DNA from: Macrostomum lignano | Lineage: Eukaryota | DNA: 64,000 nt | Direction of reading: 5' to 3' | NCBI GenBank assembly: GCA_002269645.1 | Contig: NIVC01003505.1 | Location: 30,483-94,482 of the forward strand | Shown: piece after piece, positions 22,077 through 62,743 of the stretch | Layout: every line of letters begins with the position of its first letter | How positions within the stretch are numbered: position 1 is the stretch's first letter | Program-made: the position numbers and the translations under genes | The notes under the pieces: generated by a model | Seen by the model: only the letters and a program-made list of their open reading frames with translations | Told to the model about the DNA's origin: nothing | Databases searched by the model: none

Positions 22077-22109
<33 letters not shown>

Positions 22110-24106: not shown

Positions 24107-24149
<43 letters not shown>

Positions 24150-28562: not shown

Positions 28563-28609
<47 letters not shown>

Positions 28610-35636: not shown

Positions 35637-35724
<88 letters not shown>

Positions 35725-38485: not shown

Positions 38486-39154
38486 TGTCGGACACAGATT
38501 TTGTTCTGGTATCAAAAGTGTCGAAACTAATTCTGGATACCCCTGGTAAAAAGAGTTAATTTATAATTTACGTTGCGCTTGTCCTCATTTTATCTGGTAT
38601 GTCTGTTATTCAGTCTGAGTGTAAACTCATGCTTACTCATATGCTCGTATGGGGCATTAGAGCATACTATTTTATTTACTGTGGTCAATTAGTATTTTGG
38701 GTTTTTTAATTTATCGTCATATTACCATATATTTCCGTGAGTTGACTAAGTTCCAAAAAAAGTGTTTACCCCTTATGTTAAAGCATTCGACTCCGAAGTT
38801 TCTGTTTGCATGCTTTTTTGTTTCATTTTTCTGCTCCTCTGCTGGATAATGGTGTTGGGCATTGTGCGCTTTTTTGAAAGAAGACAATGTACATATGGGC
38901 TCAAATACGCTAATAGCTCCACTGGCGTACAATTATCTTCTGTCACTGCGTCTATATTTCTCAGTGTTACATTTCTCTTTTATAATAGCGAAGATGAAAC
39001 ACTAGAACTGTTTTGAAAATTGAGGACAGCAGCAGCAGCAAAGCACACCGTGGCATTTGGTTACAAAACAGTGGCTTTTTAAAACTGCTGCGAGGCATTT
39101 AGATCTGAGAATTATTTGAAAGGAGTGAAGGTAGGTAATGAGGTAGAGAAGAGG

Positions 39155-39925: not shown

Positions 39926-40210
39926 ACTAAGATGATAGAGAAGGATAGGAGGAAAGGAGTGGAGAGGAGTAAGATTTTAGGGATAAAAATGAAAACAAGT
40001 TTAGCACAGGATAACACAAACAGATGTAGATTATGAGTAGGTTTTGATTAGCTGTTACCTGTTATTCTCTTCAGATTAACACAATAAAAATATTTGGTAT
40101 TTATACAAATTTCAGCAAAGACTCAGCCATAAAGAGCTTCGCAGTCGTGACCGTTAATATAAGTTTGTTAATTTATTAAATTGCTTAAGAGTAACAGTCG
40201 CAGCATCGTA

Positions 40211-41800
40211 ATGGGCTGCCTGCCTGGCAGTGAGATTGCCAACCTGCTCACCGCAGTCTCCGTCATCATCATCCTTGGCGCCTATGTCTGCATTTTCCAT
40301 TTCGGCGTGCAGCCGTTTCAGCGTCATTTCTTTTGCAACGACGAGAGCATCAGCTATCCGTACAAGCCCGACACTGTCACCATGATTGTAGCGGCAGTGG
40401 TTGGCGCTGCTATCATCCTACTGACAGTAGTAATCATAGAGATTGTCCGGCACGCTATGCGCAGCAACTGTAGGGCTAGCGAGTCGGATCGGACCTATGC
40501 TAACTGTCTGGGCAGCTGCGGGCTCAAGCCGGAGTCCCGTTGTACTCGAGCCACTGTGGCCATCTTCAGAGGCCTGCTGTTGGCCGCCTTGGGCACCCTC
40601 ATCACGGAGGTTCGTTGGTTGTTTATAGCCTGTCTGAACAAGTCACAGTCAAAGTCAAGTCACAGTCAAAGACACAATTCACAGTCAAAGACACACATAA
40701 TTCACAGTCAAAGACACACATAATTCACAGTCAAAGGCACACACAATTCATAGTCAAAGACACACATAATTCACAGTCAAAGACACACACAATTCACAGT
40801 CAAAGACACACACAATTCACTTTGACTGTGTGTCTAATTCACAATTCACATAGTCACAATTCACAGTCAAAGACACACAAAATTCACAGTCAAAGACACA
40901 CACAATTCACAGTCAAAGACACACACAATTCACAGTCAAAGACACACACAATTCACAGTCAAAGACACACACAATTCACAGTCAAAGACACACACAATTC
41001 ACAGTCAAAGACACACACAATTCACAGTCAAAGACACACAATTCACGGTCAAAGACACACAATTTACAGTTAAAGACACACACAATTCACAGTCAAAGAC
41101 ACAACTCACAGTCAAAGACACACACAATTCACAGTCAAACACACAATTCACAGCAAAAACACTCGCACTCGCCCTTACCCAGGTGGTCACGGTGACTGTC
41201 AAGACCATCATCGGGCGTCACCGGCCGCACTTCCTGGCTGTGTGCCGCGCCAACACGAGCTCGCCTGAGTACCTCACAGCCTGCGCCTCTCACCAGCCTC
41301 TGACGCCGTCGGTGTGCCATCCAGTCGACTCAAAACAGTTCAGAGAGGCCATGCTGTCCTTCCCATCCGGTCACTCGTCGCACAGCATCTACATGACGCT
41401 GTTCGCCGCGCTGTACATGCAGTCCAAATTCACGTTTGCCAAGGGTCACGCAGTGAAATGGCTGCTGCAGTCATTTGTGCTGGTGTGGGGCCTGGCCGTG
41501 TGCGCCAGCCGGGTTAGCGACTACAAGCATCACTGGAGCGACGTGCTTGGCGGTGGCCTCATCGGAGCTGCCGTGGCTCTCCTTGTGTGCCTGTACCTGC
41601 GGCCCAGCTACACTGAGGCCTGCTCAGCCTGCGGCTTCGTCACCGGGGATGTTGACGGAGGCTGCGCTAGCGATGTGGAAGCTGGCGGAGCCGCCGGAGC
41701 AGCCAACAATAACAATGGAGATGCAGGTGATGCAGGGGTATGGGGCAGTTATTGTCATGTCTCCGTGAATATTGTCTTCAGGGCTTGTGTATTCGACTAG
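40211..41800 (+). CDS. PLPP: Type 2 phosphatidic acid phosphatase / phospholipid phosphatase (PAP2, wunen-like), join(40211-40609, 41183-41800), ~338 aa
   Basis: FQRHFFCNDESISYPY N-terminal motif; catalytic motifs KTIIGRHRP (KxxxxxxRP), FPSGH and SRVSDYKHHWSD (SRxxxxxHxxxD); several hydrophobic helices; phase-0 GT-AG intron. The C-terminus might instead splice to a small exon at 43908-43972. Confidence 0.92.
40640..41160. repeat. 23-bp minisatellite (AATTCACAGTCAAAGACACACAC)n filling the PLPP intron
   Basis: Direct tandem units. Confidence 0.95.
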
Positions 41801-41802
41801 GA

Positions 41803-42548
41803 ATAGTGTGTGTCTGATGGTGATTAGTGTGTGTCTGATGGTGATTAGTGTGTGTCTGATGGTGATTAGTGTGTGTCTGATGGTGATTAGTGTGTGTCTG
41901 ATGGTGATTAGTGTGTGTCTGATGGTGATTAGTGTGTGTCTGATGGTGATTAGTGTGTGTCTGATGGTGATTAGTGTGTGTCTGATGGTGATTAGTGTGT
42001 GTCTGATGGTGATTAGTGTGTGTCTGATGGTGATTAGTGTGTCTGATGGTGATTAGTGTGTGTATGATGGTGATTAGTGTGTGTCTGATGGTGATTAGTG
42101 TGTGTATGATGGTGATTAGTGTGTGTCTGATGGTGATTAGTGTGTGTCTGATGGTGATTAGTGTGTGTCTGATGGTGATTAGTGTGTCTGATGGTGATTA
42201 GTGTGTGTCTGATGGTGATTAGTGTGTGTCTGATGGTGATTAGTGTGTGTCTGATGGTGATTAGTGTGTGTCTGATGGTGATTAGTGTGTGTCTGATGGT
42301 GATTAGTGTGTGTCTGATGGTGATTAGTGTGTGTCTGATGGTGATTAGTGTGTGTCTGATGGTGATTAGTGTGTGTCTGATGGTGATTAGTGTGTGTCTG
42401 ATGGTGATTAGTGTGTGTCTGATGGTGATTAGTGTGTGTTTGATGCTGATTAGTGTGTGTCTGATGGTGATTAGTGTGTGTCTGATGGTGATTAGTGTGT
42501 GTCTGATGGTGATTAGTGTGTGTCTGATGGTGATTAGTGTGTTTGACT
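41803..42548. repeat. 21-bp minisatellite (GATTAGTGTGTGTCTGATGGT)n
   Basis: Direct tandem units; source of the CLMVISV / HHQTHTN ORFs. Confidence 0.97.
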
Positions 42549-42727
42549 GTGAACATCTTCTAAGTGGTGTTAAGGACCTAAAAATTAATTTTTTATTCTG
42601 TTTTTAAATGTTGCTCGGTTCATTGTTTTTTTATATAACTAAAAGTGAAGTACGTAATTCAGTCTTCCGATTTCAAGGATTTTCAACCATTAAATCTAAC
42701 TTGAAATTTTTCGCAAGCTTCGATTCC

Positions 42728-43470
42728 CATTGAGAATCGCCCTCCCCAACCCACATTGAGAGTCGCCCTCCCCAACCCACATTGAGAGTCGCCCTCCCCA
42801 ACCCACATTGAGAGTCGCCCTCCCCAACCCACATTGAGAATCGCCCTCCCCAACCCACATTGAGAATCGCCCTCCCCAACCCACATTGAGAATCGCCCCC
42901 CCAACCCACATTGAGAATCGCCCCCCCCCCCAACCCACATTGAGAATTGCCTCCCCCAACCCACATTGAGAGTCGCCCTCCCCAACCCACATTGAGAGTT
43001 GCCCTCCCCAACCCACATTGAGAGTCGCCCTCCCCAACCCACATTGAGAATCGCCCCCAACCCACATTGAGAATCGCCCCCCCCAACCCACATTGAGAAT
43101 CGCCTCCCCCCAACCCACATTGAGAATCGCCTCCCCCCAACCCACATTGAGAATCGCCCTCCCCAACCCACATTGAGCATTGCTAATCGCCTTCCAAGCC
43201 ACATTGAGAATCGCCCTTTGGCTTCAACATCATTGAGAATCGCCCTTTGGCTTCAACATCATTGAGAATCGCCCTTCAACATCATTGAGAATCGCACTTC
43301 AACATCATTGAGAATCGCCCTTCAACATCATTGAGAATCGCCCTTCAACATCATTGAGAATCGCCCTTCAACATCATTGAGAATCGCCCTTCAACATCAT
43401 TGAGAATCGCCCTTCAACGTCATTGAGAATCGCCCTTCAACATCATTGAGAATCGCCCTTCAACCCCACT
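42728..43470. repeat. Compound minisatellite with core CATTGAGAATCGCCC: 26-bp C-rich units followed by 23-bp AACAT units
   Basis: Direct tandem units; the unit changes near 43200. Confidence 0.93.
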
Positions 43471-45489: not shown

Positions 45490-45715
45490 GGGCTGCAGCC
45501 TAGTGGTTAGAGTGTCGGACTCACGACTAAAAGGTCGGGGGTTCGATTCTCTACCCAATTCGAACAATTTGTGTCCTTGAGCAAGACGCTTAACTCTGCA
45601 TTGCTTCAGTTCACCCGGCTGTAAAATGGGTGCCAGCATTAGCTGGGGTCCTATAGCTGGGCTATCGGTTGCACATATGCCCATTAGGGCGGGTGTAATC
45701 AGTTAATTTAATTCA
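45490..45715 (+). mobile_element. tRNA-derived SINE, copy 1
   Basis: A box TAGTGGTTAGAG, B box GGTTCGATTC, central GTGTCCTTGAGCAAGAC...CACCCGGCTGTAAAATGGGTGCC resembling V/Meta-type SINE core domains; three copies in the window. Confidence 0.85.
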
Positions 45716-46810: not shown

Positions 46811-47710
46811 TCAACCAAAAGCAGAATCAACAAGCTTAGCGACGCCGACCACAGGACTCGCAAGGATTGCTCCAGCCCCCTGTCCGATGCTGCTCATAAT
46901 GTCCACAAAACCTGGCTGGGGCTGTTGGCACTGCGCATTTAGTAATTGCTGCTGCTCTTCTAGAAGTTTGACCTTGGCTTTCATCTTATCCATCTTCTTT
47001 GCTTCATCCCGCTGTTTCTGGGCCTCCGCCTCCTCTCGGCGTTTCCGCTCCTCAGTCTGTTTTTCCAGGTCCTTCTTCAAGTACTTGCTCGGGTTCAGCT
47101 TCGATACCTCATCGATAAGGCCCATCAGCGTTGCCACCTGCCGTTCCTGCATACCCGGGTCGCACCTCTTGCCGTTGTCCATCAGCACGTAGCGGTCTCC
47201 GAAGTCCTTCATCATCTTGTCGAGCTCAGGAATTTCTTCTCGCGCGACTTTCAGCTCTTTATTTTTAAATTCGTTGATGTCGTTGTCAAAATGGTCACCT
47301 CTGCTGAACACCACGATGACGCGCTTGCACGACTCCGGACCGAACACTTCCACAGTCTGGCGGATAGCCAGGCACTCTTCGTTTGTGAAGCGGACGTCCG
47401 CTCTGGCGACCACGAGAAAGGCGTCAACGCCGCACGGACACTTGTTCAGCGTGCGCAGCAGCTCACCCTGCGGCATGTTAACGTCCTTGGAGTCCATGGT
47501 TCCGGGAGTGTCCACCACCAGCAGGCTGCGACCGCGGACCGTTCGCATCTGCGCCTCGCACTGCTTCGTCTGCGACCTCATGCCATTTCCGACTTTGAAG
47601 CTTTCCTCCTCCATTAGGGTGTTGGCTAGAGAGCTCTTTCCGCTGCCTGTCTTGCTCATCAGCACCACCGTTGTCATCTGGCTGGAGTCTTGCGGCTGAT
47701 CGGCTGACAT
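46811..47710 (-). CDS. GIMAP: AIG1/GIMAP-family GTPase, copy 1 (299 aa, intronless; coiled coil and hydrophobic C-terminal tail)
   Basis: G1 SKTGSGKSS, G2 SQTKQC, G3 VVDTPG, conserved box CPCGVDAFLVV...RFTNEE, G4 FSRGD, G5 MDN. Confidence 0.92.
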   Translation of the reverse strand: MSADQPQDSSQMTTVVLMSKTGSGKSSLANTLMEEESFKVGNGMRSQTKQCEAQMRTVRGRSLLVVDTPGTMDSKDVNMPQGELLRTLNKCPCGVDAFLVVARADVRFTNEECLAIRQTVEVFGPESCKRVIVVFSRGDHFDNDINEFKNKELKVAREEIPELDKMMKDFGDRYVLMDNGKRCDPGMQERQVATLMGLIDEVSKLNPSKYLKKDLEKQTEERKRREEAEAQKQRDEAKKMDKMKAKVKLLEEQQQLLNAQCQQPQPGFVDIMSSIGQGAGAILASPVVGVAKLVDSAFG

Positions 47711-47786
47711 TGCTGTAGTGCAGTCTTCTCTGTAGGTTAGAGATGGCTTAGTAGTTTTCTGTTCTTGGAGCTTTGAACACCCGCTG

Positions 47787-47794
47787 TATATATA
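47787..47794 (-). promoter_or_regulatory. TATA box of GIMAP copy 1 (equivalents at 50386-50393 and 54432-54439)
   Basis: TATATATA lies 77 nt upstream of the ATG in all three copies. Confidence 0.6.
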
Positions 47795-48424
47795 GAGTTT
47801 TTTGAACAGGGTAGTGCCTAGAGCTTTAGGTAAAGCTCATCATTAAGTTCTATTTGCTATTGTCTAGAGCAGGTACTACCTGTACTCCCTGTGGTCCTCT
47901 TCGTACCGCTTTTCGATTTTCGCATTTCGCATTTCGCATTGAAGCTGCGCATTGATGAGCCTGCATGTACTCTTCAAATTTGGTCCAGAATATGCGCCTA
48001 AACTATTTATAGCACACCCAAAGTGGCCCAGCAGGTTCTCTAATAGTTTCTCTGTTTTGCTTTATCTGTCTAGTCTGCGGCAGTCATTCCAGCTGAAAGT
48101 ACACAAAATAATTTTCCATGATGGAATAACCAAGAAATCTTTGAAAACGACAATAATCAAATTGAAATATCTTTTGTGACAGCTGAGATTGGAATAAAGA
48201 CAAACACGCCTAAAAGTGAATATTTTTAAGTTGTTCCTGATTCTGGATAGGCTACCTATGTTGAAGTACTGGGGTTATTGTACTTGATAGTGAAGAATTA
48301 CCATGCCCCCATATCCCACACTCCTTGTTTGGTCGGCTTAACACAAAAAGAAACTGGAGACGTAGGTAGCATCTAGGAATTAAGGTGAGTCTTGTCTGGA
48401 TTAAAGCTTAACTCAGGACTAGTA

Positions 48425-48846
48425 TAGTATTTGTCATGCTATCTCAGCCCAGAGACATCCAAACTCAGCCAGTCCCATTCCGCAATGCGTTTTTTTGGCT
48501 CGAGCTAGTCGACTTTTACCATAGACATGCTTCCCAAGGCCATGCCATCTCAGCCCGGGACATGCAATCTCAGCCAATATAGATTTCAATTGCAAACACT
48601 TCTCGCTTCGTCTTCGTCGCTTGTTGCTCTCATTCTGTTTCATTTGCTTCGATCACAGACTAAGCCACGGACAGCTTGACATAGCATCTGAAAAGTGGCT
48701 GAGATTGCATGTCCCAGGCTGAGATAGCATGGCCCCAAGAAGCATGTCTATGGTAAAACTTGACTGGCTTACGTAAAAAATCGCACTGTCGAGATGGGCT
48801 GGCTGAGTTTGGATGTCTCTAGGCTGAGATAGCATGACAAATACTA
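48425..48846. mobile_element. 422-bp foldback MITE with TA target duplication (Tc1/mariner-like)
   Basis: ~170-bp imperfect inverted arms (TAGTATTTGTCATGCTATCTCAGCC... / ...GGCTGAGATAGCATGACAAATACTA), flanked by TA. The paralogous site near 52935 is empty. Confidence 0.88.
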
Positions 48847-49319
48847 TAGTTTTTCAACACTGAGCGCAAACTTTCTACTTCACCGATATTAATTGGTTTG
48901 CATAGCAGAATGAGGCATAAATTCTTGAGCCTGCTGTAATGGATAGCAAGCTGATCAAGCAAAGAATCACTATTGATAAGCTTCTGGATAGGCAGTGAGG
49001 CACAATAGTACAGCATAATTTGAGTCAATTTCAGCAACAACAACAAAATACTTCTCCCGCCAGCCACGCAGTGGCCAGAAAGGGTAGAAGTCAGAGAGCG
49101 TGTCTCTGGGCCATAGACCTCAAAAAGTCCATTTCGCAAAATTTGTTGTGTCACTAATTTACAAGGTTTCAAAACTGAATAACCATGGAGTATTCAACAA
49201 AACTACCGAAGCAAAGAACTCAGAAATTAACTCAATCTCATAGGACAGCGGTTGTCTATAGATAGGAGAGTGTAAGGAGTTCTTAATAAAACTGTCAGCC
49301 AAAAACTTTATCAAATAGC

Positions 49320-50309
49320 TTAGCAGCGTCGACCACAGGACTTGCAAAGATTGCTCCAGCCCCCTGTCCAAGACTGCTCACAATGCCCACAAAGCCTAAA
49401 CTGAGCTGTGGCTGTTAGCGCTGCGCATATATTGATTGCTGCTGCCGCTGATGCTGCTGATGCTGCTGCTGATGCTGCTGCTGATGCTGCTGATGCTGCT
49501 GCTGCTGCTGCTGATGCTGCTGCTGCTGCCGCTGATGCTGCTGCTGCTGTCGCTGATGCTGCTGCTGCTTTAAAAGCTTGATCTCGGCTTCCATCTTTTC
49601 CATCTTCTACGTCATTCTGCTTCTGCGCCTCAGTCTCCTCTCGGCGTTTCCGCTCCTCAGTCTGCTTATCCAGGTACTTGTACTTGCTCGGGTTCAGCTT
49701 CGATACCTCATCGATAAGGCCCATCAGCGTTGCCACCTGCCGTTCCTGCATACCCGGGTCGCACCTCTTGCCGTTGTCCATCAGCACGTAGCGGTCTCCG
49801 AAGTCCTTCATCATCTTGTCGAGCTCAGGAATTTCTTCTCGCGCGACTTTCAGCTCTTTATTTTTAAATTCGTTGATGTCGTTGTCAAAATGGTCACCTC
49901 TGCTGAACACCACGATGACGCGCTTGCACGACTCCGGACCGAACACTTCCACAGTCTGGCGGATAGCCAGGCACTCTTCGTTTGTGAAGCGGACGTCCGC
50001 TCTGGCGACCACGAGAAAGGCGTCAACGCCGCACGGACACTTGTTCAGCGTGCGCAGCAGCTCACCCTGCGGCATGTTAACGTCCTTGGAGTCCATGGTT
50101 CCGGGAGTGTCCACCACCAGCAGGCTGCGACCGCGGACCGTTCGCATCTGCGCCTCGCACTGCTTCGTCTGCGACCTCATGCCATTTCCGACTTTGAAGC
50201 TTTCCTCCTCCATTAGGGTGTTGGCTAGAGAGCTCTTTCCGCTGCCTGTCTTGCTCATCAGCACCACCGTTGTCATCTGGCTGGAGTCTTGCGGCTGATC
50301 GGCTGACAT
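49320..50309 (-). CDS. GIMAP: AIG1/GIMAP-family GTPase, copy 2 (329 aa; frameshift-derived polyAla + CxxC tail)
   Basis: GTPase domain is the same as copy 1 in the ORF translation; the 3' end matches copy 3. Confidence 0.85.
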   Translation of the reverse strand: MSADQPQDSSQMTTVVLMSKTGSGKSSLANTLMEEESFKVGNGMRSQTKQCEAQMRTVRGRSLLVVDTPGTMDSKDVNMPQGELLRTLNKCPCGVDAFLVVARADVRFTNEECLAIRQTVEVFGPESCKRVIVVFSRGDHFDNDINEFKNKELKVAREEIPELDKMMKDFGDRYVLMDNGKRCDPGMQERQVATLMGLIDEVSKLNPSKYKYLDKQTEERKRREETEAQKQNDVEDGKDGSRDQAFKAAAASATAAAASAAAAAASAAAAAASAASAAASAAASAASAAAAINICAALTATAQFRLCGHCEQSWTGGWSNLCKSCGRRC

Positions 50310-50980
50310 TGCTGTAGTGCAGTCTTCTCTGTAGGTTAGAGATGGCTTAGTAGTTTTCTGTTCTTGGAGCTTTGAACACCCGCTGTATATATAGAGTTTT
50401 TTGAACAGAGTAGTTCCTCGAGTTTTAGGTAAAGCTCATCAATAAACTCTATTTGCCATTGTCAAGAGCAGGTAGTACCTGCACAACATTCTTTAATGTG
50501 GTCCTCGTACCGCTTTTCGATTTTCACTTTTCGTATTTCGCATTGAAGCTGTGCATTGATGAGCATGCATGTACTCTTCAAATTTGGTCCAGAATGTACG
50601 CCTAAACTATTTATAGCACACCCAAGTGCTCCAGTAGTTTCTCTGTTTGCTTTAGCTGTCTAGTCTGCTGCAGTCATTCCAGCTGAATGTACACAAAATA
50701 ATTTTCCATGATGAAATAACCAGGAAAATCCTTGAAACCGACAATAATCAAATTGTAATATTTTCGTGACAGCTGAGATTGAAAGAAAGACAAAACACGC
50801 CTACTGGCCTTGTAAAAAGTGCATCTTTTTAAAGTTGTTCCTGATTGTAGATAGGCTACCTATGTTGAAGTACTGGGGTTATGCACTTGACGTACCATGA
50901 TAGTGAAGAATTACCATGCCCCTTTATCCCACTCCTTGTTTGCTCGGCTTAACACAAAACGAAACTGGAGCCGCAGATTC

Positions 50981-51300
50981 AGTCCTAGAGACGCAGGTTC
51001 AGTCCTGGAGACGCAGGTTCAGTCCTGGAGACGCAGGTTCAGTCCTGGAGACGCAGGTTCAGTCCTGGAGACGCAGGTTCAGTCCTGGAGACGCAGGTTC
51101 AGTCCTGGAGACGCAGGTTCAGTCCTGGAGACGCAGGTTCAGTCCTGGAGACGCAGGTTCAGTCCTGGAGACGCAGGTTCAGTCCTGGAGACGCAGGTTC
51201 AGTCCTGGAGACGCAGGTTCAGTCCTGGAGACGCAGGTTCAGTCCTGGAGACGCAGGTTCAGTCCTGGAGACGCAGGTTCAGTCCTGGAGACGCAGATTC
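50981..51300. repeat. 20-bp minisatellite (AGTCCTGGAGACGCAGGTTC)n, 16 copies
   Basis: Near-perfect tandem units. Confidence 0.97.
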
Positions 51301-51435
51301 GTGACGGTGAGCGCTTCCTGCAGCCGCCATGACTTGCTGTTGGAAAATAATTGGAAGCGAAATGTTCTTTATACTATATTGTGTCAAATATTGTATTGTT
51401 ATTTGCTATTGAATATTAAATGAGCCCGACAAGGA

Positions 51436-52430
51436 GGCCGCTCCTGGGGAGGAGCAGCGGGCGCACCCAAGACCGGCGGCCAACCCTGAGGGGCATAGCA
51501 ACCGAGGGGTGGACGCGCGGACCGGCCCGCACGAAAAGACAGGAAAAGAACTCAGAACTGGCTTCCCCCAAACACTCTAACTCAAACAGAGTAAAACTGA
51601 TGAGTCTAACCGCCTAACCCTCGCCCCCGTAGCAACCCGCGTGTCAACCCCCGCGTTTTAAATCTTATTGCTTGAGCTGTGTTATGTAAACCTTGTCGTC
51701 GTTAGCTCACGATATCTCACCCCATCGACGCCAGGGGATGAAATTGTAGGAAGTCTGCTCAGTTATGTAACTTGAGTATTCATCTAAGAATCGTCAAGAG
51801 GCTTCGTCAAGCCTCAGTGGTATCTCTCTGCCTCTTTCTACAGAAGTGCTGAAATTTTGTCATCGGAAGTTTTCGTCCGCCTGAGGTTATAACGGAATAC
51901 GAGAGTTTACAATGGCATTGCTGCAGATTCATAATTTTTTCCTTCCTTGCCTATCCAATCCAGCCCTACAAACTCGCGCACTTGTCTTTAAACAAAGAAA
52001 CTATCCTTCATCAAAAAAGCCTTACAATAGTTGCTGAATAACCCCATCGATTCCTCAGTGTCAGAATCAGGAAAAGTTTCCAGTGTGTCAGAAGCAGAAC
52101 AGCAGTCACCCGAGACGGCTCGCAGAATTTGAAAGCTCACGATGGAGTCAAAAACAGTTTTTGCGCCTCTGCTCTCAATTCCTTCCATCGCCTACTTGTG
52201 TTCTGCTTGCCTGCCTTGGGAACTACTTTCAGAAAAGCAGCTTCAGCCCAGAGCTGCGGGGGCCATTGTCTCTGACTACAAGCTCACGTGAGGCGGCTGT
52301 GGTGAAATTCTGATTAATCTACATTTGTGTCTTTTCTGTTATTTGTATTTTATTTTCTAGTTATGCAGTATTAGTTCAAAATCCTACCAGAAGATTAGCA
52401 GCCTTTGACTGCGCAAATCGCAGATATACA
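51436..52430. repeat. ~1-kb duplicated non-coding block (second copy ~55075-56030), part of the GIMAP tandem unit
   Basis: High-identity direct match from GCAACCGAGGGGTGGACGCGCGG to CCTTTGACTGCGCAAATC. Confidence 0.9.
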
Positions 52431-52553
52431 AAAAATAATTTACGTAGTAAAAAATTTACAGAGATTCTGTAGTCTCGACAATAATTCATTAGTTTGTATG
52501 AACACAGGCTGTTTCTTTTATTTTCTATTGAACAACAATGACCTTGTCATTGA

Positions 52554-52625
52554 TGCGGCCCGAACGGAATCGAACTCGGGACTTTGACACAAGAGTCCAA
52601 CGCAATTCTATTTAACTACTTGCCC
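52554..52625 (-). other. Degenerate tRNA-like head (tRNA pseudogene or SINE fragment)
   Basis: The minus strand has a B box GAGTTCGATTCC and a weak A box over about 72 nt, but poor cloverleaf pairing. Confidence 0.35.
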
Positions 52626-53410
52626 CCAATTTAGTGAAATCAGATTGAAGAACATAGGAACTTCCTAGCAGAACTATCTTCAATGATTTTTTCTGCTAGG
52701 CCCTTGATTAAGTTACCACAGGCACATAATATCGCGTAGAACACGGATAACTTTATATTTATTCTTGGCTATTAAAAGTTTATGCAATCGGAAGGAGCCA
52801 TGCTCGAAGTGTGGCTTGTTGGTACAAATACCTGTATTAAATATTTTATATTTATTCTCACTGTTTTTACACCAATAGCATCTAGGACTTTAATTAAGGT
52901 GAGTCTTGTCTGGATTAAAGCTTAACTCAGGACTACTAATTTTTTAACACTGAGCGCAAACTTTCTACTTCACCGATATTAATTGGTTTGCATAGCAGAA
53001 TGAGGCATAAATTCTTGAGCCTGCTGTAATGGATAGCAAGCTGATCAAGCAAAGAATCACTATTGATAAGCTTCTGGATAGGCAGTGAGGCACAATAGTA
53101 CAGCATAATTTGAGTCAATTTCAGCAACAACAACAAAATACTTCTCCCGCCAGCCACACAGTGGCCAGAAAGGGTAGAAGTCAGAGAGCGTGTCTCTGGG
53201 CCATAGACCTCAAAAAGTCCATTTCGCAAAATTTGTTGTGTCACTAATTTACAAGGTTTCATAAACTGAATAACCATGGAGTATTCAACAAAACTACCAA
53301 AGCAAAGAACTCAGAAATTAACTCAATCTCATAGGACAGCGGTTTTCTATAGATAGGAGAGTGTAAGGAGTTCTTAAGAAAACTGTCAGCCAAAAACTTT
53401 ATCAAATAGC

Positions 53411-54355
53411 TTAGCAGCGTCGACCACAGGACTTGCAATGATTGCTCAAGCCTCCTGTCCGAGACTGCTCACAATGCCCACAAAGCCTAAACTGAGCTGT
53501 GGCTGTTGGCGCTGCGCATATATTGATTGCTGCTGCCGCTGATGCTGCTGATGCTGCTGCTGATGCTGCTGCTGATGCTGCTGATGCTGCTGCTGCTGCT
53601 GCTGATGCTGTTTCTTTAAAAGCTTGATCTCGGCTTCCATCTTTTCCATCTTCTACGTCATTCTGCTTCTGGGCCTCAGCCTCCTCTCGGCGTTTCCGCT
53701 CCTCAGTCTGCTTATCCAGGTACTTGTACTTGCTCGGGTTCAGCTTCGATACCTCATCGATAAGGCCCATCAGCGATGCCACCTGCCGTTCCTGCACTTC
53801 CGTGTCGCACCTCTTGCCGTTGTCCATCAGCACATAGCGGTCTCCGAAGTCCTTCATCATCTTGTCGAATCCAGGAATTTCTTCTCGCGCGACCTTCAGC
53901 TCTTTATTTTTAAATTCGTTGATGTCGTTGTCAAAATGGTCACCTCTGCTGAACACCACGATGACGCGCTTGCACGACTCCGGGCCGAACACGTCCACAG
54001 TCTGGCGGATGGCCTGGCACTCTTCGTTGGTGAAGCGCACGTCCGCTCTGGCGACCACGAGAAAGGCGTCAACGCCGCACGGACACTTGTTCAGGGTGCG
54101 CAGCAGCTCACCCTGCGGCATGTTAACGTCCTTGGAGTCCATGGTTCCGGGAGTGTCCACCACCAGCAGGCTGCGACCGCGGACCGTTCGCATCTGCGCC
54201 TCGCACTGCTTCGTCTGCCACCTCATGCCGTTTCCGACTATGAAGCTTTTCTCGTTCATTAGGGTGTTGGCTAGAGAGCTCTTTCCGCTGCCCGTCTTGC
54301 TCATCAGCACCACCGTTGTCATCTGGCTGGAGTCTTGTGGCTGTTCGGCTGACAT
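53411..54355 (-). CDS. GIMAP: AIG1/GIMAP-family GTPase, copy 3 (314 aa; frameshift-derived polyAla + CxxC tail)
   Basis: Same G motifs as the other copies; it differs from copies 1 and 2 by about 16 amino-acid substitutions in the N-terminal 210 aa. Confidence 0.85.
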   Translation of the reverse strand: MSAEQPQDSSQMTTVVLMSKTGSGKSSLANTLMNEKSFIVGNGMRWQTKQCEAQMRTVRGRSLLVVDTPGTMDSKDVNMPQGELLRTLNKCPCGVDAFLVVARADVRFTNEECQAIRQTVDVFGPESCKRVIVVFSRGDHFDNDINEFKNKELKVAREEIPGFDKMMKDFGDRYVLMDNGKRCDTEVQERQVASLMGLIDEVSKLNPSKYKYLDKQTEERKRREEAEAQKQNDVEDGKDGSRDQAFKETASAAAAAASAASAAASAAASAASAAAAINICAAPTATAQFRLCGHCEQSRTGGLSNHCKSCGRRC

Positions 54356-56121
54356 TGCTGTAGTGCAGTCTTCTCTGTAGGTTAGAGATGGCTTAGTAGT
54401 TTTCTGTTCTTGAAACTTTGAACACCCGCTGTATATATAGAGTTTTGTGAACAGAGTAGTGCCTAGAGCTTTAGGTAAAGCTCATCATTAAGTTATATTT
54501 GCTATTGTCTAGAGCAGGTAGTACCTGTACTGCCTCCCTGTGGTCCTCTTCGTACCGCTTTTCGATTTTCGCATTTCGCATTTCGCACTGAAGTTGTGCA
54601 TTGATGAGCCTGCATGTACTCTTCAAATTTGGTCCAGAATGTACGCCTGAACTATTTATAGCACATCCAAGTGGCCCAGCAGGTTCTCTAATAGCTTCTC
54701 TGTTTGCTTTAGCTGTTTGATCTGCTGCAGCCATTTCAGCTGAAAGTACGCAAAATTATTTTCCATAATGGAATAACCAGGAAATCTTTGAAACCGACAA
54801 TAATCAAACTGTAATACTTTCCTGACAGCTGAGATTGAAAGAAAGGCAAAACACGGCTACTTGCCTCGTAAAAATTGCATCTTTTGTTTCTGATTGTAGA
54901 TAGGCTACCTATGTTGAAGTACTGGGGTTATGCACTTGACGTACCATGATAGTAAAGAATTACCATGCCCCTTTATCCCACTCCTTGTTTGCTCGGCTTA
55001 ACACAAAACAAAACTGAAGACGCAGATTTAGTCCTGGAGACGAATATTAAATTCAATAACAAATTACAATACAACCCCCGAGGGGCGTAGCAACCGAAGG
55101 GTGGACGCGCGGACCGGCCCGCACGAAAAGACAGCAAAAGAACTCAGAACTGACTTCCCCCAAACACTCTAACTCAAACAGAGTAAAACTGATGAGTCTA
55201 ACCGCCTAACCCTCGCCCCGTAGCAACCCGCGTGTCAACCCCGCGTTTTAAATCTTATTGCTTGAGCTGTGTTACCTGTGTAAACCTTGTCGTCGTTAGC
55301 TCACGATATCTCACCCCATCGACGCCAGGGGATGAAATTGTAGGAAGTCTGCTCAGTTATGTAACTTGAGTATCCATCTAAGAAGCGCCAAGAGGCTTCG
55401 TCAAGCCTCAGTGGTATCTCTGGCTCTGTATACAGAAGTGCTGAAATTTTGTCATCTAAGCAGGTTTTCTTCCGCCTGAGGTTATAACGGAATACGAGAG
55501 TTTACAATGGCATTGCTGCAGATTCATAATTTTTTCCTTCCTTGCCTATCCAATCCAAACCCTACAAACTCGCGTACTTGTCTTTAAACAAAGAAACTCT
55601 CCTTCATCAAAAAAGCCTTCAAAAGACTTCGTAGTTGCTGAATAACCCCATCGATTCCTCAGTGTCAGAATCAGGAAAAGTTTCCAGTGTGTCACAAACA
55701 GAACAGCAGTCACCCGAGACTGCTCGCAGAATTTGAAAGCTCACGATGAAGTCAAAAACAGTTTTTGCGCCTCTGCTCTCAATTCCTTCCATCGCCTACT
55801 TGTTTTCTGCTTGCCTGCCTTGGGAACTACTTTCAGAAAAGCAGCTTCAGCCCAGAGCTGCGGGGGCCATTGTCTCTGACTACAAGCTCACGTGAGGCGG
55901 CTGTGGTGAAATTCTGATTAATCTACATTTGTGTCTTTTCTGTTATTTGTATTTTATTTTCTAGTTATGCAGTATTAGTTCAAAATCCTACCAGAAGATT
56001 AGCAGCCTTTGACTGCGCAAATCACAGGCATACGAATGCAATATTTTACATCAGTATAAATTCTACTCAAGGTGATTCAGACTACTGTAAATTACTGTTT
56101 TTAACACATGCACAGGCTGTT

Positions 56122-56460
56122 TATGTTCTGCCTCTCCGGCGTCGAGAATGCGGAGCACTTTATCTGTAAATGCCCCACCTTTACTCAGGACAGGCTCACC
56201 TACCTCGGCCCAAACCCGGACCTCTCCGACGTTTTCAGTCTCGAGAATCTCTGCCAGCTCGTCCGCTACCTAAGAGCTACCGGGCGGACGACAAACCACC
56301 TCCTGGACTCTCCGGAGGGGGACCGCGCTGCGGACACCGGCACCACTGGAACTCCCTGCGCGACACCGCGCAGCACCAGCTGCCCGTGGTCACCAGGGTT
56401 TAGCGAAATGGGCGGCAACGCCTCCTCGCTGTTTCCGGACTCCGGACTCCGGCCCCAGAG
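56122..56460 (+). mobile_element. 5'-truncated non-LTR retrotransposon 3' end (C-terminal zinc knuckle and 3' UTR)
   Basis: [26 protein letters not shown]...[10 protein letters not shown] matches the CxxC-x7-H-x4-C...LG...FL..TG tail I recognise from I/R1/Loa-group LINE ORF2. It is GC-rich relative to its flanks and begins where homology to the paralogous site near 52510 stops. Confidence 0.7.
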
Positions 56461-57027
56461 AAAAACGCGTATACTGATCGATTCCTCAGTGCCAGAAGCA
56501 GACAAGTCTTCAGTTCGTTGGTCGCAGGAAAAATTTTCAATGCTGCAAAACTGCTTCAAAAATGCTTCGAAACTGTTTGATGCTTTAGCATCTGAGTTCG
56601 AGCATCAGTGCGCAATTGCACAGGTTGCTAAACTGGTTGTGATGTGACTGTTTAGAAAAAGTAAAAAAGTATTTCTAATCAATCACCGATGCTCCACGGT
56701 GCGTAATAACAATTAAAAAGGCACACGTTGTGTCAGCAGCAGTATAACAGTCTCATGTGGCTCCAAAAGTATTCGTCCTACGACGTTTACCACAATTTCT
56801 TGCCAGTATTTCCCTCATCGTAGGACAAAGAGTCAGATAGTGTGGTGAAGATTTTTGCTGATGAGTGTCAATCTTAAAGTTTTTTCCGTGTTGGAAAATT
56901 TTATATGGGAAGTGAGCCTTCGGACTCAGCCAATTTCACAGGTATAGGTGTGCAAGAACTAGAGGACATCAAACGGCTTGAAAAGTCGGCATCTACCTTA
57001 GCAGCTACTGAGAATTCTTAAAACCTA

Positions 57028-57292
57028 GAGCCTAGTGGTTAGAGCGTCGGACTCACGACTGGAAGGTTGGAGGTTCGATTCTCGACCCAATTAGAACAAT
57101 TTGTGTCCTTGAGCGAGACAACTTAACTCTGCATTGCTTCAGTTCACCCAGCTGTAAAATGGGTGCCAGCATTAGCTGGAGTAATTCAGGGTGTGTGTGT
57201 CGACCAACCAGTCCTTGGACTGAATAGCCGTACGCTGCTTTCAGATGTCGTTTGTTTATCTGCCCATTAAGTCAGTAGTAATCAGTTATTTA
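57028..57292 (+). mobile_element. tRNA-derived SINE, copy 2
   Basis: Matches 45490-45715 (A and B boxes, core domain, TAATCAGTTA tail). Confidence 0.85.
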
Positions 57293-57608
57293 ATTATTAT
57301 TTATTGTACTCGAAATCTGGTCGGCATCTGAACTGCAGCAAATTTAGACCTATTTCTAACTTATCACTTTATCTGCGATCATAGGTAATCAGCATTCAGT
57401 AGTGCGTAGCCAATCGCAATAGGCTTTCTAGCATTTTCCAGAATGTCGTAGACAATAATGGAAACCACCTGATTGGATAGTAATCTACATCTAGTTACTG
57501 CCTGCACTCGCAACAGGATAAAAGACTGATTCGACTAAGAACTAAGATAGCACTAGCACTATCATTAAGACTCCAAAGACTTAAACTGTCGCCTTGTAGT
57601 TCTTCTCA

Positions 57609-58326
57609 ATGAGCATTTCCCAGCTGCAGTCGGCGTTGCTGTGCGCCCTCTTGACCTGTGCGGCTGGCAGGGTGGCTCATTTCTCTTATGTCGGTTGCTA
57701 CCAAGACGCCGCTAACCCAAACAGAGACTTGACAGGCCTGAAAACACTGAAAGGACTTAACAATCTGGGATCGTACATCACCGACGGTGCATTAATGTAC
57801 AGCCCTGACATGACGCTCGGGGTCTGCAGCAACTTCTGCTCTCTGTTCGGCTTCCCTACTTCGGCGTGCAGGTCGGCAAGCAGTGCTTCTGCGGCAGCTC
57901 CTACGGACTCCACGGACAGCTCAGCGATAGCAAATGTAACAGCCAGTGCAAGGGAAACCCAGAGCAGATTTGCGGTGGCTTCACCATCAACTCCGTGTTC
58001 GCTCTGCACTACCCAAGTAAGTTAACATTGCTCCGTTCTCTTGGAGTTGCGAATTTATCTAATTGAGTAGGTTTTTGTTGGAACCACAACTTCCAGAAAG
58101 CAATGCCTACACTGTGCTGAAGGACATCACGGTGACCTCTGCCGTGGACTCGTCCTGGCCGGCCGCTGCCCAGTCTGACGCGGACTGCCTGCTCCAGTGC
58201 AGCGCCAGAGCCAACTGCAGCGCCGCCGTCTTCTCGAAGCAGCTGCTCGCCTGCCGCCTGCTGCCGTTCGCCTTCCCGCCAGCCAGCCTGACCGGACCGG
58301 AGTGGGCTGTGTTCATCAAAACTTAG
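57609..58326 (+). pseudogene. Secreted WSC + PAN/apple-like protein, copy A, join(57609-58016, 58097-58326), with a 1-nt frameshift near 57855 (pseudogene or assembly error)
   Basis: Signal peptide, YVGCYQD...CSNFC...YFGVQVGKQCFCG...C...C.GNPEQICGG (WSC); exon 2 CLLQCSARANCSAAVF...ACRL (PAN/apple-like). TTCCCTAC here versus TTTCCATAC in copy B. 80-nt phase-1 intron. Confidence 0.8.
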
Positions 58327-59967
58327 GTGATTTCAGAGAAAAGGACAAGCGGCTTCGAAGCCAAACAGCATGACAACGATTCGACTCTGAACAAAACTGA
58401 AAAAGATTTATCTCAGAAAAAAATCGGTTTTTGATCTAATAAGATTTTTGATGTGCTGGAATTCGCTTTGTTACTGTGAGATAGTGTGAGTTAAATAAAA
58501 AATGTTTTAAATCGATTGTCAATCAGCTTTTTGGCAATTAACAAATGGCATTAAACCATGCATCTTCCTGGGATTAAGATTTATTTCAATAGTTTTCCTG
58601 AGTGTGCTATTCGAGTTTTCACTTCCCCCGTAATCCCATTAATTCTACGAAGTATATTGATTATTCTAAAAGAAAAAAACAAAATCATCTTAGTTCGAAA
58701 ACCTTCCTAATATACTACTTTTACTCACTACTTGTATTAGTCCTCTAATTATCCACTTTCCATACGTATTCTTTAAACCTCATTCAATTTGCTGCCCAAA
58801 ACCAGAGTCCCAACAACTTTCAACCATCAGTGCAGGGCCACCTGCACCTTCCTAAAAATTAATTTACAATTGAAGTTTTCTCATTTGTGCCACTAGGTTC
58901 CTATTATAAGCAGCATGATCCTAAGTTCGAATCCAAATACCAGTGCAAAAAGGAATGCACCCAGTACACGCAATGGATCTAGACAGGATGGATCTAGAAA
59001 TTAGGGATTTTGACAAGAATGCGTATTTATGCACATTAGCGCACAATTTAGGTAACGACGCAAACCTGACTACTTTAATCAGCTCATGCGCTGCTTTTGA
59101 GACACTCGAAGGGCAGAAATCCACCTTCCAGCAGGAAGCTGCTAGCGACGCTGCATGGTTCCTCCGTGATCGTCGCAAAAGCTCGATCTCTTCTTTTTCG
59201 GGCGGTCGCGCTTTCCGCAGTATCTCGACAATAAAAGATGGACGAAAAAATTTGACGAATTGATTTTTTTTAGTTTTCATTTTGGTTCGGTCCTTCCAAG
59301 GATTTCTATTGTTTTGGGAAATACCTGATAAGAAAAGAAAAAAAGCTGCTCAAAAAATAGGAAAACCTTCGTTTTGAGGCTTGCTTCCTATGTTTAAAAA
59401 CAGTATTGTATATAGAAGAAATTTTTTCAATAACGGAAACTCACAGGCTAGGGAGCCAGTAACTGGGGGAGGCGGCCACCTTCCGAACAAAGGGCGAGAC
59501 AAAGCTGTTGTAGTCAGTGGATTGGGTCATTGCGAGCATGGTTGCTCTGTGTCCACATGGTTGCCTTTAAAGACACAACAGGGATGTGGAGGGATCGACG
59601 GAGTATCAGGTGGCGTTGCAATCTGTGCTGCAGCCTGCTTGAAGCTGTCAAACCGCCACTGAGTGTCGGCTCTCGACAGCTTCCATCATCTTCTCCTGTG
59701 CTGCGAGTATCTCCCGTAGCTCTGCTTAGAGCCTGCAAAGTTTAGGGTCAACGTCCCTACAGTTTTATGCGTGTACTGAAAAGTTTAAACTTTTGTAGCT
59801 CGCCAAAAATATTGCCTGTGCTGCGGGAAAATTTTATAACTTTCGTTCGCTCGCTTTCACGATTTCGTGAAAGGACCCATTTTGGGGGGAGTTTGTGCAC
59901 GGAACTTGCCCGAGGGTTGTTGTGCAATTGACAACCAATGAGGGACAGAGATTGTACATGCCTGACG

Positions 59968-60070
59968 ATTAACACACCCTCAATTACCCCAGCTATTGCT
60001 GGCACCCATTTTACCGCTGGGTGAACCGAAGCAATGCAGAGTAAATAAGTGTCTTGCTCAAGAACACGAA
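59968..60070 (-). mobile_element. tRNA-derived SINE, copy 3 (core domain only)
   Basis: The reverse complement reads GTGTTCTTGAGCAAGACAC...CACCCAGCGGTAAAATGGGTGCCAGC. Confidence 0.8.
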
Positions 60071-60537
60071 CTATATACTCAGCAACATCGAAAAGTCGTC
60101 ATCACAGAAGATCCAGTCTGTGGTCGCCACTTTTGAGAGCGCAGGTAAAGTCTCTCAATCCTTTGCGAGTGACGCAACTTAGCTACGCCACGCGGCAGAC
60201 TTGAGTCGAGGAATGAAGTGGGGGGGGGCGGTGTGCGAGGGTTGGACGGATTAAAGCTTGTTTTGATTCATTGTTGTTTACGGGAATGAAGTTGTAGTAC
60301 GCCACTGTCGGAGTTTTAGATACGCTCGCAACTGTTTTAATCATCCTATGATCCGTCGCTAGTATCTGTGAATAATCGAGCATGGCTAATTCAAAGCTTA
60401 CAGAACCGTCTGATTAGATAAAATCTGAATGCCTGTACTCAGAAAAGGATAAAAGGATGACGCTCGTGAGAGAATTGCTTCCAAGCTCCGGATGTTGAGA
60501 TTCGATAGCTTTAACCCGTAACTATTCTTGAATTAGA

Positions 60538-61245
60538 ATGAGAATCTCACTGTTAGAGTCGGCGTTGCTGTGCGGCCTCCTGACCTGTGCAGCCGGCAGG
60601 GTGGCTCATTTCTCCTACGTTGGTTGTTATCGAGACGGTGATAACTCGAACAGAGATATGACAGGTCTGAAAGGGTTAAAAAATCTGGGGCCGTACAGTA
60701 TTGGTGTTGGCGACCTAGTGCACAGCCTCAACAACATGTCGCACGAGTTCTGCAGCAACGTCTGCTCTCTGGGCCGCTTTCCATACTTCGGCGTGCAGGT
60801 CGGCAAGCAGTGCTTCTGCGGCAGCTCCTACGGACTCCACGGACAGCTCAGTGATAGCATGTGCAACAGGCAGTGCACGGGAAACCCAGAGCAGATTTGT
60901 GGCGGCTTCTCAATCAACTCCGTGTTTGCTATGACCTTCCCGAGTGAGTTAGCTCGACGCTGCCTCTTAGAATTTCAACTGAGAGAAAATCTTAATAAAA
61001 TTACACAACTTTCAGGCAACAATGCATACACTGTGCTGAAGGACATCACGGTGACCTCTGCCGTGGACTCATCCTGGCCGGCCGCTGCCCAGTCCGACGC
61101 GGACTGCCTGCTCCAGTGCAGCGCCAGAGCCAACTGCAGCGGCGCCGTCTTCTCCAAGCAGCTGCTCGCCTGCCGCCTGCTGCCGTTCGCCTTCCCGCCA
61201 GCCAGCCTGACCGGACCCGGATGGGCTGTGTTCATCAAAACCTAG
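60538..61245 (+). CDS. Secreted WSC + PAN/apple-like protein, copy B, join(60538-60943, 61016-61245), 211 aa (235 aa if the intron is retained)
   Basis: Signal peptide, complete WSC cysteine pattern and a PAN/apple-like module. Donor GTGAGT at 60944 and acceptor tttcag at 61015 are at the same position as the copy A intron. Confidence 0.9.
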   Translation: MRISLLESALLCGLLTCAAGRVAHFSYVGCYRDGDNSNRDMTGLKGLKNLGPYSIGVGDLVHSLNNMSHEFCSNVCSLGRFPYFGVQVGKQCFCGSSYGLHGQLSDSMCNRQCTGNPEQICGGFSINSVFAMTFPSELARRCLLEFQLRENLNKITQLSGNNAYTVLKDITVTSAVDSSWPAAAQSDADCLLQCSARANCSGAVFSKQLLACRLLPFAFPPASLTGPGWAVFIKT

Positions 61246-62119: not shown

Positions 62120-62715
62120 TCAAGGTTGCATGAAGGTGATGGGGCAAGGATCATGATTTCGAATGATTGAAAGGTTTAAATTTTCTCTCAGTCTCTCATC
62201 TCTGGATAGGCCAAACTGACACTTGTCTGCCTGCATGCAGAGTTGCTGTGCATACTCACGAATGCTCATTGATGCCGTGCGAGTGATATGCTGGAAATTG
62301 AATCTCTCAGCCATGACGAACGTCTTTGGTTCCAGGATGCTGGCCAGTAGTTTGGTCAGTTCATCGAAGCTCTTTTCTCCCGGCTTCTTGGAGCGGCTCG
62401 ATCTGCCAATGCGTCGTACAGCTTGGTGCTGAGCTTCATCAGCAGCAGCTTATTTTTCGTGTCGTCCTGCCAGCCGTTGAGTTCGCTGCACAGTGTGAAT
62501 CGGTCCAACCACCTCTGGAAGTTCGAACTTTCATCGAGTTTTTCGATGTCAACTTGCTGTCCTCTTGATACTTGTGCGCTTGGGTTCTGCGCTGTCGCTG
62601 TTGCCGACTTTGTCGCTTGGACTGATTTCGACGAGATCGCAAGCGGTGGTGCTTTGTCGCTCGAAACCGTTTTACCAACTCCTTTAGTTGGCGATGCTGG
62701 CGTACTTCCAGGCAT
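62120..62715 (-). pseudogene. Ty3/gypsy gag remnant (frameshifted, truncated)
   Basis: FQRWLDRFTLCSELNGW...KLLLMKLSTKLYDAL / KKPGEKSFDELTKLL...EPKTFVMAERFNF...SIREYAQQL...ADKCQFG...DERLRE matches a typical gypsy gag. PBS-like TGGCGTCGC at 62741-62733. Confidence 0.8.
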
Positions 62716-62743
62716 TTTCGTAGCCTATGCTTGCGACGCCACT

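Follow-up and report, generated by a model that had tools for sequence, protein, structure and literature searches.

The 64,000-nt stretch of Macrostomum lignano DNA analysed here (assembly GCA_002269645.1, contig NIVC01003505.1, positions 30,483 to 94,482; hereafter the window, with positions counted from its first letter) carries, within 15 kb, three genes for GTPases of the AIG1/GIMAP family (AIG1-A, AIG1-B and AIG1-C) and two genes that join a WSC domain to a PAN/apple domain (WSC-PAN genes 1 and 2). The locus is probably a lineage-specific neighbourhood of two unrelated tandem families which abut by chance, and in which a conversion-driven mosaic is maintained under purifying selection. 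On the sequence evidence, the adjacency of the AIG1 and WSC-PAN genes is most likely incidental, and a defence role for either family would rest on analogy with other family members. A previous sequence-only reading had described the region as a rapidly diversifying, birth-and-death defence cluster that may pair a variable extracellular sensor with an intracellular GTPase effector. Its gene content is borne out by the open reading frames (ORFs) and by Pfam, with each of the five genes found where it had placed them, and tblastn over the whole window returned no additional AIG1 or WSC-PAN copy.

Conversion, copy turnover and selection

As shown in Table 1, self-comparison of the window resolves the AIG1 array into tandem units of about 3–3.6 kb containing copies B and C, with a third, shorter unit around copy A; units B and C differ by 6–8% plus indels. 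Copies A and B share a perfectly identical tract of 729 bp, which spans from 99 bp upstream of the ATG through codon 210 and whose flanks are 12.8% divergent upstream and 27% divergent downstream, and the other AIG1 pairs have variants in common in a reticulate patchwork. The perfect tract is read as the signature of gene conversion, and the patchwork as the outcome of repeated conversion. Pairwise, region-wise NG86 estimates on codon alignments, which are averages that can mask a few selected sites, gave a ratio of non-synonymous to synonymous divergence (dN/dS, or omega) of 0.19–0.48 for the G domain in every AIG1 pair. WSC-PAN copies 1 and 2 are 82.7% identical in nucleotide sequence, and their synonymous divergence (dS) falls from 0.87 in the N-terminal half of WSC, the most divergent part, to 0.27 in the C-terminal half and 0.135 in PAN, with dN/dS values of 0.25, 0.34 and 0.09, respectively. 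No diversifying selection (dN/dS > 1) was found among the locus copies, for which pairwise omega is 0.09–0.48. Mosaic divergence, which had been noticed from the sequence, is real in both families; the rapid diversification proposed along with it, if understood as selection, is not upheld by omega values of 0.19–0.48 (AIG1 G domain) and 0.09–0.34 (WSC-PAN). Since the patchiness is the same at synonymous as at non-synonymous sites, the mosaic points to conversion tracts rather than diversifying selection, and the similarity pattern of both families is read as tracts of differing age under ordinary purifying selection.

The window DNA is 95–99% identical to two other contigs of the assembly, NIVC01000462.1 and NIVC01001968.1 (loci L001 and L002), and forms a patchwork of best matches, some to L001 and some to L002; several near-identical copies of each region are present in M. 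lignano. By this similarity, the window is taken to be a third version of one locus beside L001 and L002, as an allele or a homeologue. A PAP2 gene adjoins AIG1-A in all three versions, and in each of them AIG1 and WSC-PAN genes lie within 15 kb of each other. The number of AIG1 copies is three in the window, two in L001 (one A-type and one B-type) and one in L002 (A-type). Contamination or horizontal transfer as the source of the AIG1 genes was ruled out, because the flatworm genes that flank them are the same on all three contigs. Both copy-number change and pseudogenisation are seen, in the 3/2/1 AIG1 copies, a frameshift common to B and C, a frame break in WSC-PAN gene 1 and a frameshifted PAN exon at a further WSC-PAN locus (L004), and the first three of these support the birth-and-death style proposed earlier. 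The AIG1 array appears to expand and contract by unequal crossing-over and to be repeatedly overwritten and patched by gene conversion. It offers an example of gene-family turnover, in which a young array in a recently duplicated genome is reshaped by conversion, unequal crossing-over and a microsatellite-linked frameshift.

The frameshift affects the tails of AIG1-B and AIG1-C. A 5-bp deletion is common to window B, window C and the B-type copy of L001 (L001B), situated just 3' (in gene sense) of window position 49612 in B and next to 53658 in C; it shifts the frame, so that the CAG tract is read as GCA and encodes polyAla/Ser. This tract is expanded in B and C, the polyQ and hydrophobic tail being swapped for polyAla and a Cys-rich tail, and the shifted ORF terminates in CxxC-x13-CxxC. 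By tblastn, the old frame of B still yields the A-type tail (residues 257–299), with 64% identity, and the old frame has independent stops, TAA in window B and TGA in window C. Rescue of the A-type tail by an intron or a compensating indel was rejected, since the net indel of 121 nt is not a multiple of 3 and stops interrupt the old frame in both window B and window C. Copy A would represent the ancestral layout, consisting of the G domain, a charged helix, polyQ and a weakly hydrophobic end; B and C would derive from a copy that lost 5 bp and, with it, lost the hydrophobic end to an accidental Cys-rich tail. If expressed, B and C would be soluble GTPase variants; otherwise, they would be heading towards pseudogenes. 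The frame break in WSC-PAN gene 1 has a single cause: the C-run at 57853–57855 holds 3 C in the window and 4 C in L001 and L002, where the orthologues are intact and 212 aa long. Either the window carries a null allele here or the assembly has an error in the homopolymer, and because a C-run one base short is typical of long-read errors, this pseudogene may not be real.

Two other accounts of these patterns have been weighed. That collapsed or mis-joined long-read contigs of a duplicated and repeat-rich genome produced the WSC-PAN-1 frameshift, the perfect A=B tract and the third copy of AIG1 is unlikely. The single homopolymer base (CCC versus CCCC) is a classic long-read error, the near-identical copies of each region and the alternation of best matches between L001 and L002 would favour mis-joining, but the independent contig L001 holds A-type and B-type copies with the identical 5-bp deletion, units B and C are too far apart, in substitutions and indels, for trivial read duplication, and the genes and families exist whichever way the contigs are joined. 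An arms race, in which the mosaic stems from positive, diversifying selection acting on those parts of WSC-PAN that contact ligands and on some parts of AIG1, is still less probable. It would be consistent with the clustered amino-acid differences and in-frame indels of 3–9 nt in the N-terminal half of WSC, with the clustering of variable AIG1 columns at residues 33–50, 150–163 and 182–187, and with a PAN-exon omega near 1 between the locus and the genes of another WSC-PAN array (L003). However, synonymous divergence climbs together with non-synonymous divergence, so that even the N-terminal half of WSC combines its high dS with an omega of 0.25; omega does not exceed 0.48 for any AIG1 pair; and the identical or near-identical tracts run into non-coding flanks, which selection on the protein cannot explain.

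Linkage of the AIG1 and WSC-PAN genes

Gene calls and tblastn within ±10 kb of each paralogue were used to sample whether the two families recur together. In this range, AIG1 is missing from five other WSC(-PAN) loci: L003, with four WSC-PAN genes beside a thioredoxin-glutathione-reductase-like gene; L004, with two WSC-PAN genes, one with its PAN exon frameshifted, and no called neighbours; L005/6, with two WSC-PAN genes next to an unannotated 395-aa gene; L009/10, with one WSC-PAN gene next to a UBR1-like gene; and L011/12, with two WSC genes next to a carboxylesterase. Likewise, a second AIG1 cluster (L007/8), with three to four AIG1 genes beside histone H2A/H2B and dynein light chain genes, has no WSC-PAN gene. 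The pairing is present at one of six sampled WSC(-PAN) loci and one of two AIG1 loci, and the three versions of the locus, being alleles or homeologues, count as a single observation; the adjacency is thus seen at one independent locus only. The 400 bp upstream of the AIG1 genes and of the WSC-PAN genes have no 7-mer or longer word in common, and each family has its own TATA-like element. The nearest pair, AIG1-C and WSC-PAN-1, is divergently oriented, with 3.25 kb and repeats in between. The proposed sensor–effector pairing finds no support in the five other WSC(-PAN) loci, the second AIG1 cluster or the upstream sequences, and within the sampled loci the two families are scattered independently of each other, an outcome that the sequence-only reading had itself named as speaking against it. 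Any gene has a neighbour, and the AIG1/WSC-PAN pairing was picked post hoc. In practical terms, adjacency on the DNA is no evidence of functional pairing here.

WSC and PAN domains are binding modules. This property would suit a co-adapted defence module in which a variable secreted WSC-PAN protein senses microbial glycans, the neighbouring GIMAP-like GTPase is the intracellular effector and selection keeps the linkage. The proximity of both families in all three versions of the locus and the concentration of divergence in the N-terminal half of WSC can also be cited for such a module, and coral and snail GIMAP/AIG genes are reported to respond to immune challenge (PMC3723955 and PMC7053062). 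It is nevertheless very improbable: the three versions belong to one locus, the pairing is missing at every other sampled locus of either family, it is not evident how an unanchored secreted protein would reach a cytosolic GTPase, no promoter or motif is common to both families, dN/dS is below 1 throughout, and the annotation of L001 and L002 calls AIG1-A and nothing at the WSC-PAN copies or at AIG1-B. It is equally hard to credit that the AIG1 array and the WSC-PAN pair come under joint regulation in some defence or gut cell type of the flatworm and that the B/C tail is a functional C-terminus; if this were true, the two families would make up a lineage-specific response unit of an extracellular binder plus a GTPase. 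As regards the tail itself, it is doubtful, though less so, that B and C are neofunctionalised, with polyAla and CxxC-x13-CxxC forming a new C-terminal module, for example for zinc binding, on a soluble protein. In window B, window C and L001B, the new frame runs uninterrupted to one common stop; the old frame decayed independently in two copies, and the G domain is kept under purifying selection. Yet stops are rare in GC-rich GCN repeats, so that chance alone would leave the frame open; of the differences between B and C that show up in the protein of the new tail, at least five in number, every one is an amino-acid change; the purifying selection seen on the G domain may simply mirror conversion from copy A; and no gene is called at L001B.

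Several points weigh against chance adjacency and a conversion-driven mosaic. The genome measures several hundred Mb, in which about two AIG1 loci and at least six WSC loci would, a priori, seldom fall within 10 kb of each other by chance, and the linkage sample has a limited reach. On the contig of L001, the WSC-PAN array of L003 is only about 60 kb away, which places the AIG1 array within a WSC-PAN-rich region where AIG1 may simply have landed. Errors of assembly could account in part for the perfect 729-bp tract, for the differences in copy number and for the frameshift in the C-run, and the openness of the new frame in window B, window C and L001B leaves room for a function of the tail.

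Gene models, wider families and other features of the window

PF04548 (AIG1) matches all three AIG1 ORFs with E-values of 1.3e-37 to 6.4e-35 and scores of 120.8–129.6 bits (cutoff 27). In the annotation, the orthologues P0001 and P0002 each consist of one exon of 897 nt whose translation is exact, in agreement with the earlier description of the genes as intronless. The AIG1 proteins of the window are 92–95% identical to BOX15_Mlig012322 g1 and g3, and AIG1-A is 95% identical to P0001 over the 235-aa G-domain region. Among solved structures, the nearest to AIG1-A by phmmer is human GIMAP7 (3zjc, 1.7e-27), followed by GIMAP4, 5, 2 and 1; GIMAP chains match at 1.7e-27 to 8.6e-11, and Toc33/34 chains more weakly, at 3e-8 to 4e-6. 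By these matches, the window proteins appear closer to the GIMAPs than to the Toc34/159 branch. The alignment with GIMAP7 takes in the P-loop KTGSGKS, VVDTPG and the conserved box RFTNEE/RYTEEE (R[FY]TxEE), and the P-loop opens with Ser instead of Gly (SKTGSGKS) both in the window clade and in a second Macrostomum AIG1 clade. Behind the G domain of AIG1-A come a helical stretch of charged residues, a short polyQ and a C-terminal segment of moderate hydrophobicity (Kyte–Doolittle hydropathy, KD19 = 1.45). Residues 213–255 of AIG1-A are rich in K/E/R/Q, and residues 214–254 align to the GIMAP7 chain past its G domain. According to PMC7053062, it is a coiled coil behind the G domain that sets GIMAPs apart from other AIGs. 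The distant paralogues P0021 and P0022 have a C-terminal layout resembling that of AIG1-A. By analogy, the weakly hydrophobic end of AIG1-A probably mediates membrane association, and family knowledge suggests that the window proteins would bind GTP and dimerise. The second AIG1 cluster (L007 2987–11070, L008 7–11179) comprises 3–4 genes or fragments on both strands that are about 50% identical to the window copies, and each of its genes carries an intron inside the G domain. These genes document GIMAP-like GTPases for a free-living flatworm, whose genome has at least two clusters of them. Within the literature library searched, no paper joins Macrostomum with GIMAP, AIG1 or WSC, and a term search of PMC7053062 and PMC8857920, on AIG/GIMAP distribution, found flatworms unmentioned.

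The WSC-PAN genes had been described as encoding a signal peptide, WSC and PAN; matches to the WSC and PAN profiles and a signal-like N-terminus are present, and the gene models now have two exons, one for WSC and one for PAN, copy 1 being out of frame in the window. Between these exons lies a GT..AG intron of phase 1, 80 nt long in copy 1 and 72 nt in copy 2. Spliced copy 2 encodes 211 aa; its intron happens to stay in frame, so that the 235-aa ORF at 60538–61245 is an intron read-through. The WSC profile PF01822 scores 58.6 bits in copy 2 (cutoff 27.8), with eight Cys between residues 30 and 121, and only 17.6 bits in window copy 1 because of the frameshift. The best solved relatives of this domain are the WSC of Kremen1 (2.4e-6) and a 118-residue WSC-domain chain, PDB 7pz2. 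The PF00024 match covers only positions 16–53 of 76 in the profile (37 of 76 positions). An AlphaFold2 model of the family member P0006, from an 11-sequence alignment, has a predicted local distance difference test score (pLDDT) of 31.9, too low for use. The N-terminus of copy 2 is signal-like, with a hydrophobic core ALLCGLLTCAAG at residues 9–20 (KD 2.0), and a hydropathy scan found no later 19-residue window above KD 1.1. The pair would represent tandem members of a large family, each a protein of about 210 aa with signal peptide, 8-Cys WSC and PAN/apple, encoded by two exons. By family knowledge, the products would be secreted and bind ligands, and they are probably extracellular carbohydrate- or protein-binding proteins.

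WSC-PAN gene 2 is 89% identical to UniProt A0A1I8FZH1. A word-indexed protein search returned one weak match from a protist and 13 WSC-PAN relatives from M. lignano; an exhaustive HMMER search returned 4427 WSC proteins, among which every named match of about 130–240 aa came from M. lignano. These small WSC(-PAN) members are spread over at least 10 contigs, and the paralogue P0016 is labelled 'Apple domain-containing' in UniProt. The phase-1 intron between WSC and PAN was found in five of the six annotated family members examined, P0013 being spliced in phase 0. Long ParaSite models with 5–12 matched stretches are probably tandem arrays fused into one gene model. As a large expansion of small putative secreted proteins, the family is a reasonable follow-up target in an organism amenable to RNA interference. 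The PAN exon (58146–58305, 61065–61219) is 83–91% identical in nucleotides to the L003/L004 arrays and the WSC exon about 72–77%. Between the locus and other WSC-PAN arrays, PAN dS is about 0.28 and WSC dS at least 0.8; PAN dS being far below WSC dS, exon-specific homogenisation or constraint is suggested. In the GCA_002269645.1 annotation, AIG1-A and PAP2 are called, while the B-type AIG1 and both WSC-PAN genes of the locus are uncalled, which may hint at low or absent transcript support; WSC-PAN family members elsewhere do carry annotation.

Table 1. Positions of genes, exons, duplicated tracts and repeats (window coordinates unless a contig version is named).
Feature	Position	Strand	Remarks
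AIG1-A	46811..47710	-	299 aa, intronless; canonical form; Pfam AIG1 1.3e-37
AIG1-B	49320..50309	-	329 aa; G domain identical to A over 210 codons; tail frameshifted to polyAla/Ser + CxxC..CxxC
AIG1-C	53411..54355	-	314 aa; frameshifted tail of B type
WSC-PAN gene 1, exon 1 (putative signal peptide + WSC)	57609..58016	+	out of frame at C-run 57853-57855
WSC-PAN gene 1, exon 2 (PAN/apple)	58097..58326	+	PAN_1 7e-5, 23.0 bits vs cutoff 21.4
WSC-PAN gene 2, exon 1 (putative signal peptide + 8-Cys WSC)	60538..60943	+	WSC 7.5e-16
WSC-PAN gene 2, exon 2 (PAN/apple)	61016..61245	+	PAN_1 2e-5, 24.8 bits vs cutoff 21.4
Tandem duplication unit with AIG1-B	48843..52453	-	self-BLAST, 92-94% identity to 52932-56060
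Tandem duplication unit with AIG1-C	52932..56060	-	self-BLAST; absent from L001 and L002
Gene-conversion tract in copy A	47081..47809	-	729 bp, 100% identical to 49680-50408
Conversion-tract partner in copy B	49680..50408	-	729 bp, 100% identical to 47081-47809
(GCA/CAG)n-type microsatellite in AIG1-B tail	49437..49569	-	polyAla/Ser in shifted frame; copy C equivalent 53528-53610
20-bp minisatellite, 16.8 copies, upstream of AIG1-B	50965..51300	.	other copy number in L001 and L002
Dispersed short repeat, SINE/MITE-like, ~150-220 bp	57029..57247	.	other copies 45497-45649, 59972-60067 (inverted)
Decayed LTR-retroelement gag-like fragments	62123..62724	-	Retrotrans_gag E 0.003, DUF7083 E 2.5e-4, below gathering score
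Copies uncalled in GCA_002269645.1 annotation	L001 7117-8106; L001 2037-2752; L002 2094-2804, 5224-5939		

The genes had been said to be interleaved with debris of short and long interspersed elements (SINE, LINE), miniature inverted-repeat transposable elements (MITE) and gypsy long terminal repeat (LTR) elements. The dispersed repeat of about 150–220 bp does recur, also at the unrelated loci L004, L007 and L008; the gag-like fragments, the only Pfam matches of the intergenic ORFs, stay below threshold and the putative LINE tail at 56105–56644 has no Pfam match, so the LINE, gypsy, SINE and MITE labels are largely unconfirmed. Elsewhere in the window, an inverted repeat (22089–25080 / 27675–30686) has CT/AG-rich low-complexity arms of about 3 kb that are 90–99% complementary in most segments, with strongly opposite GC skew on the two arms and an AT-rich spacer of 2.6 kb (GC 0.29); this may reflect a large palindrome or foldback element, or else an error of assembly. 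Neighbouring genes include a DIX-domain exon, Axin/Dishevelled-like (4737–6098, minus strand, E 4.8e-27), an RNF25-like gene with RWD and RING domains and a long Q/R/D-rich repeat region (35327–37628, plus strand), and the PAP2 lipid phosphatase gene (40181–41800, plus strand), conserved beside AIG1-A in L001 and L002. Long micro- and minisatellite arrays occupy 1–1027, 13594–15378, 37788–38559, 40540–41073 and 42179–43204 and yield spurious long ORFs of repetitive peptide; the simple-repeat content of the window is unusually high.

Comparison with known systems

The window WSC has the 8-Cys domain above the Pfam threshold in common with Kremen1/2, polycystin-1, fungal Wsc sensors and WSC-repeat proteins. 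Unlike these proteins, it is a single WSC in a tiny predicted-secreted protein, without a transmembrane segment, kringle or CUB, and is fused to one PAN/apple module; moreover, the family has expanded into many tandem arrays, its named small members all being from M. lignano. With the plasminogen/HGF N domain and the nematode and apicomplexan PAN/apple proteins, the window protein has in common an above-threshold PAN_1 match with the Cx3C...C...C core, although the match is limited to 37 of 76 profile positions and the pLDDT of the model is 32. As for gene pairs, AIG1-C and WSC-PAN-1 are divergently oriented like the head-to-head immune pairs of plants, in which sensor and helper are nucleotide-binding leucine-rich repeat (NLR) proteins. 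Unlike the plant pairs, they are separated by 3.25 kb with inserted repeats and have no common motif, the pairing is not repeated at other sampled loci, and one partner is predicted to be extracellular and unanchored.

The closest parallels of the AIG1 array are human GIMAP7/4/5/2/1 and the AIG arrays of Biomphalaria glabrata, which have the same AIG1 G domain with P-loop, DTPG and R[FY]TxEE box. The window AIG1 proteins are only 30–36% identical to fish and mollusc GIMAPs and differ from the known GIMAPs in the Ser that replaces the first P-loop Gly; unlike known GIMAP arrays, their array is very small, with 1–3 copies, two of which are frameshifted in the tail. In vertebrate and mollusc GIMAPs, the AIG1 domain lies on a single exon, as in the window copies, and is followed by a helical extension rich in charged residues and then by a hydrophobic C-terminus, as in AIG1-A. 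In PMC7053062, the AIG/GIMAP tandem arrays of snail, coral, plant and mammal are reported to have formed by segmental duplication, unequal crossing-over and conversion. The same paper describes arrays that include partial copies, for which duplication, unequal crossing-over and conversion are held responsible, and in this the window array appears to be alike.

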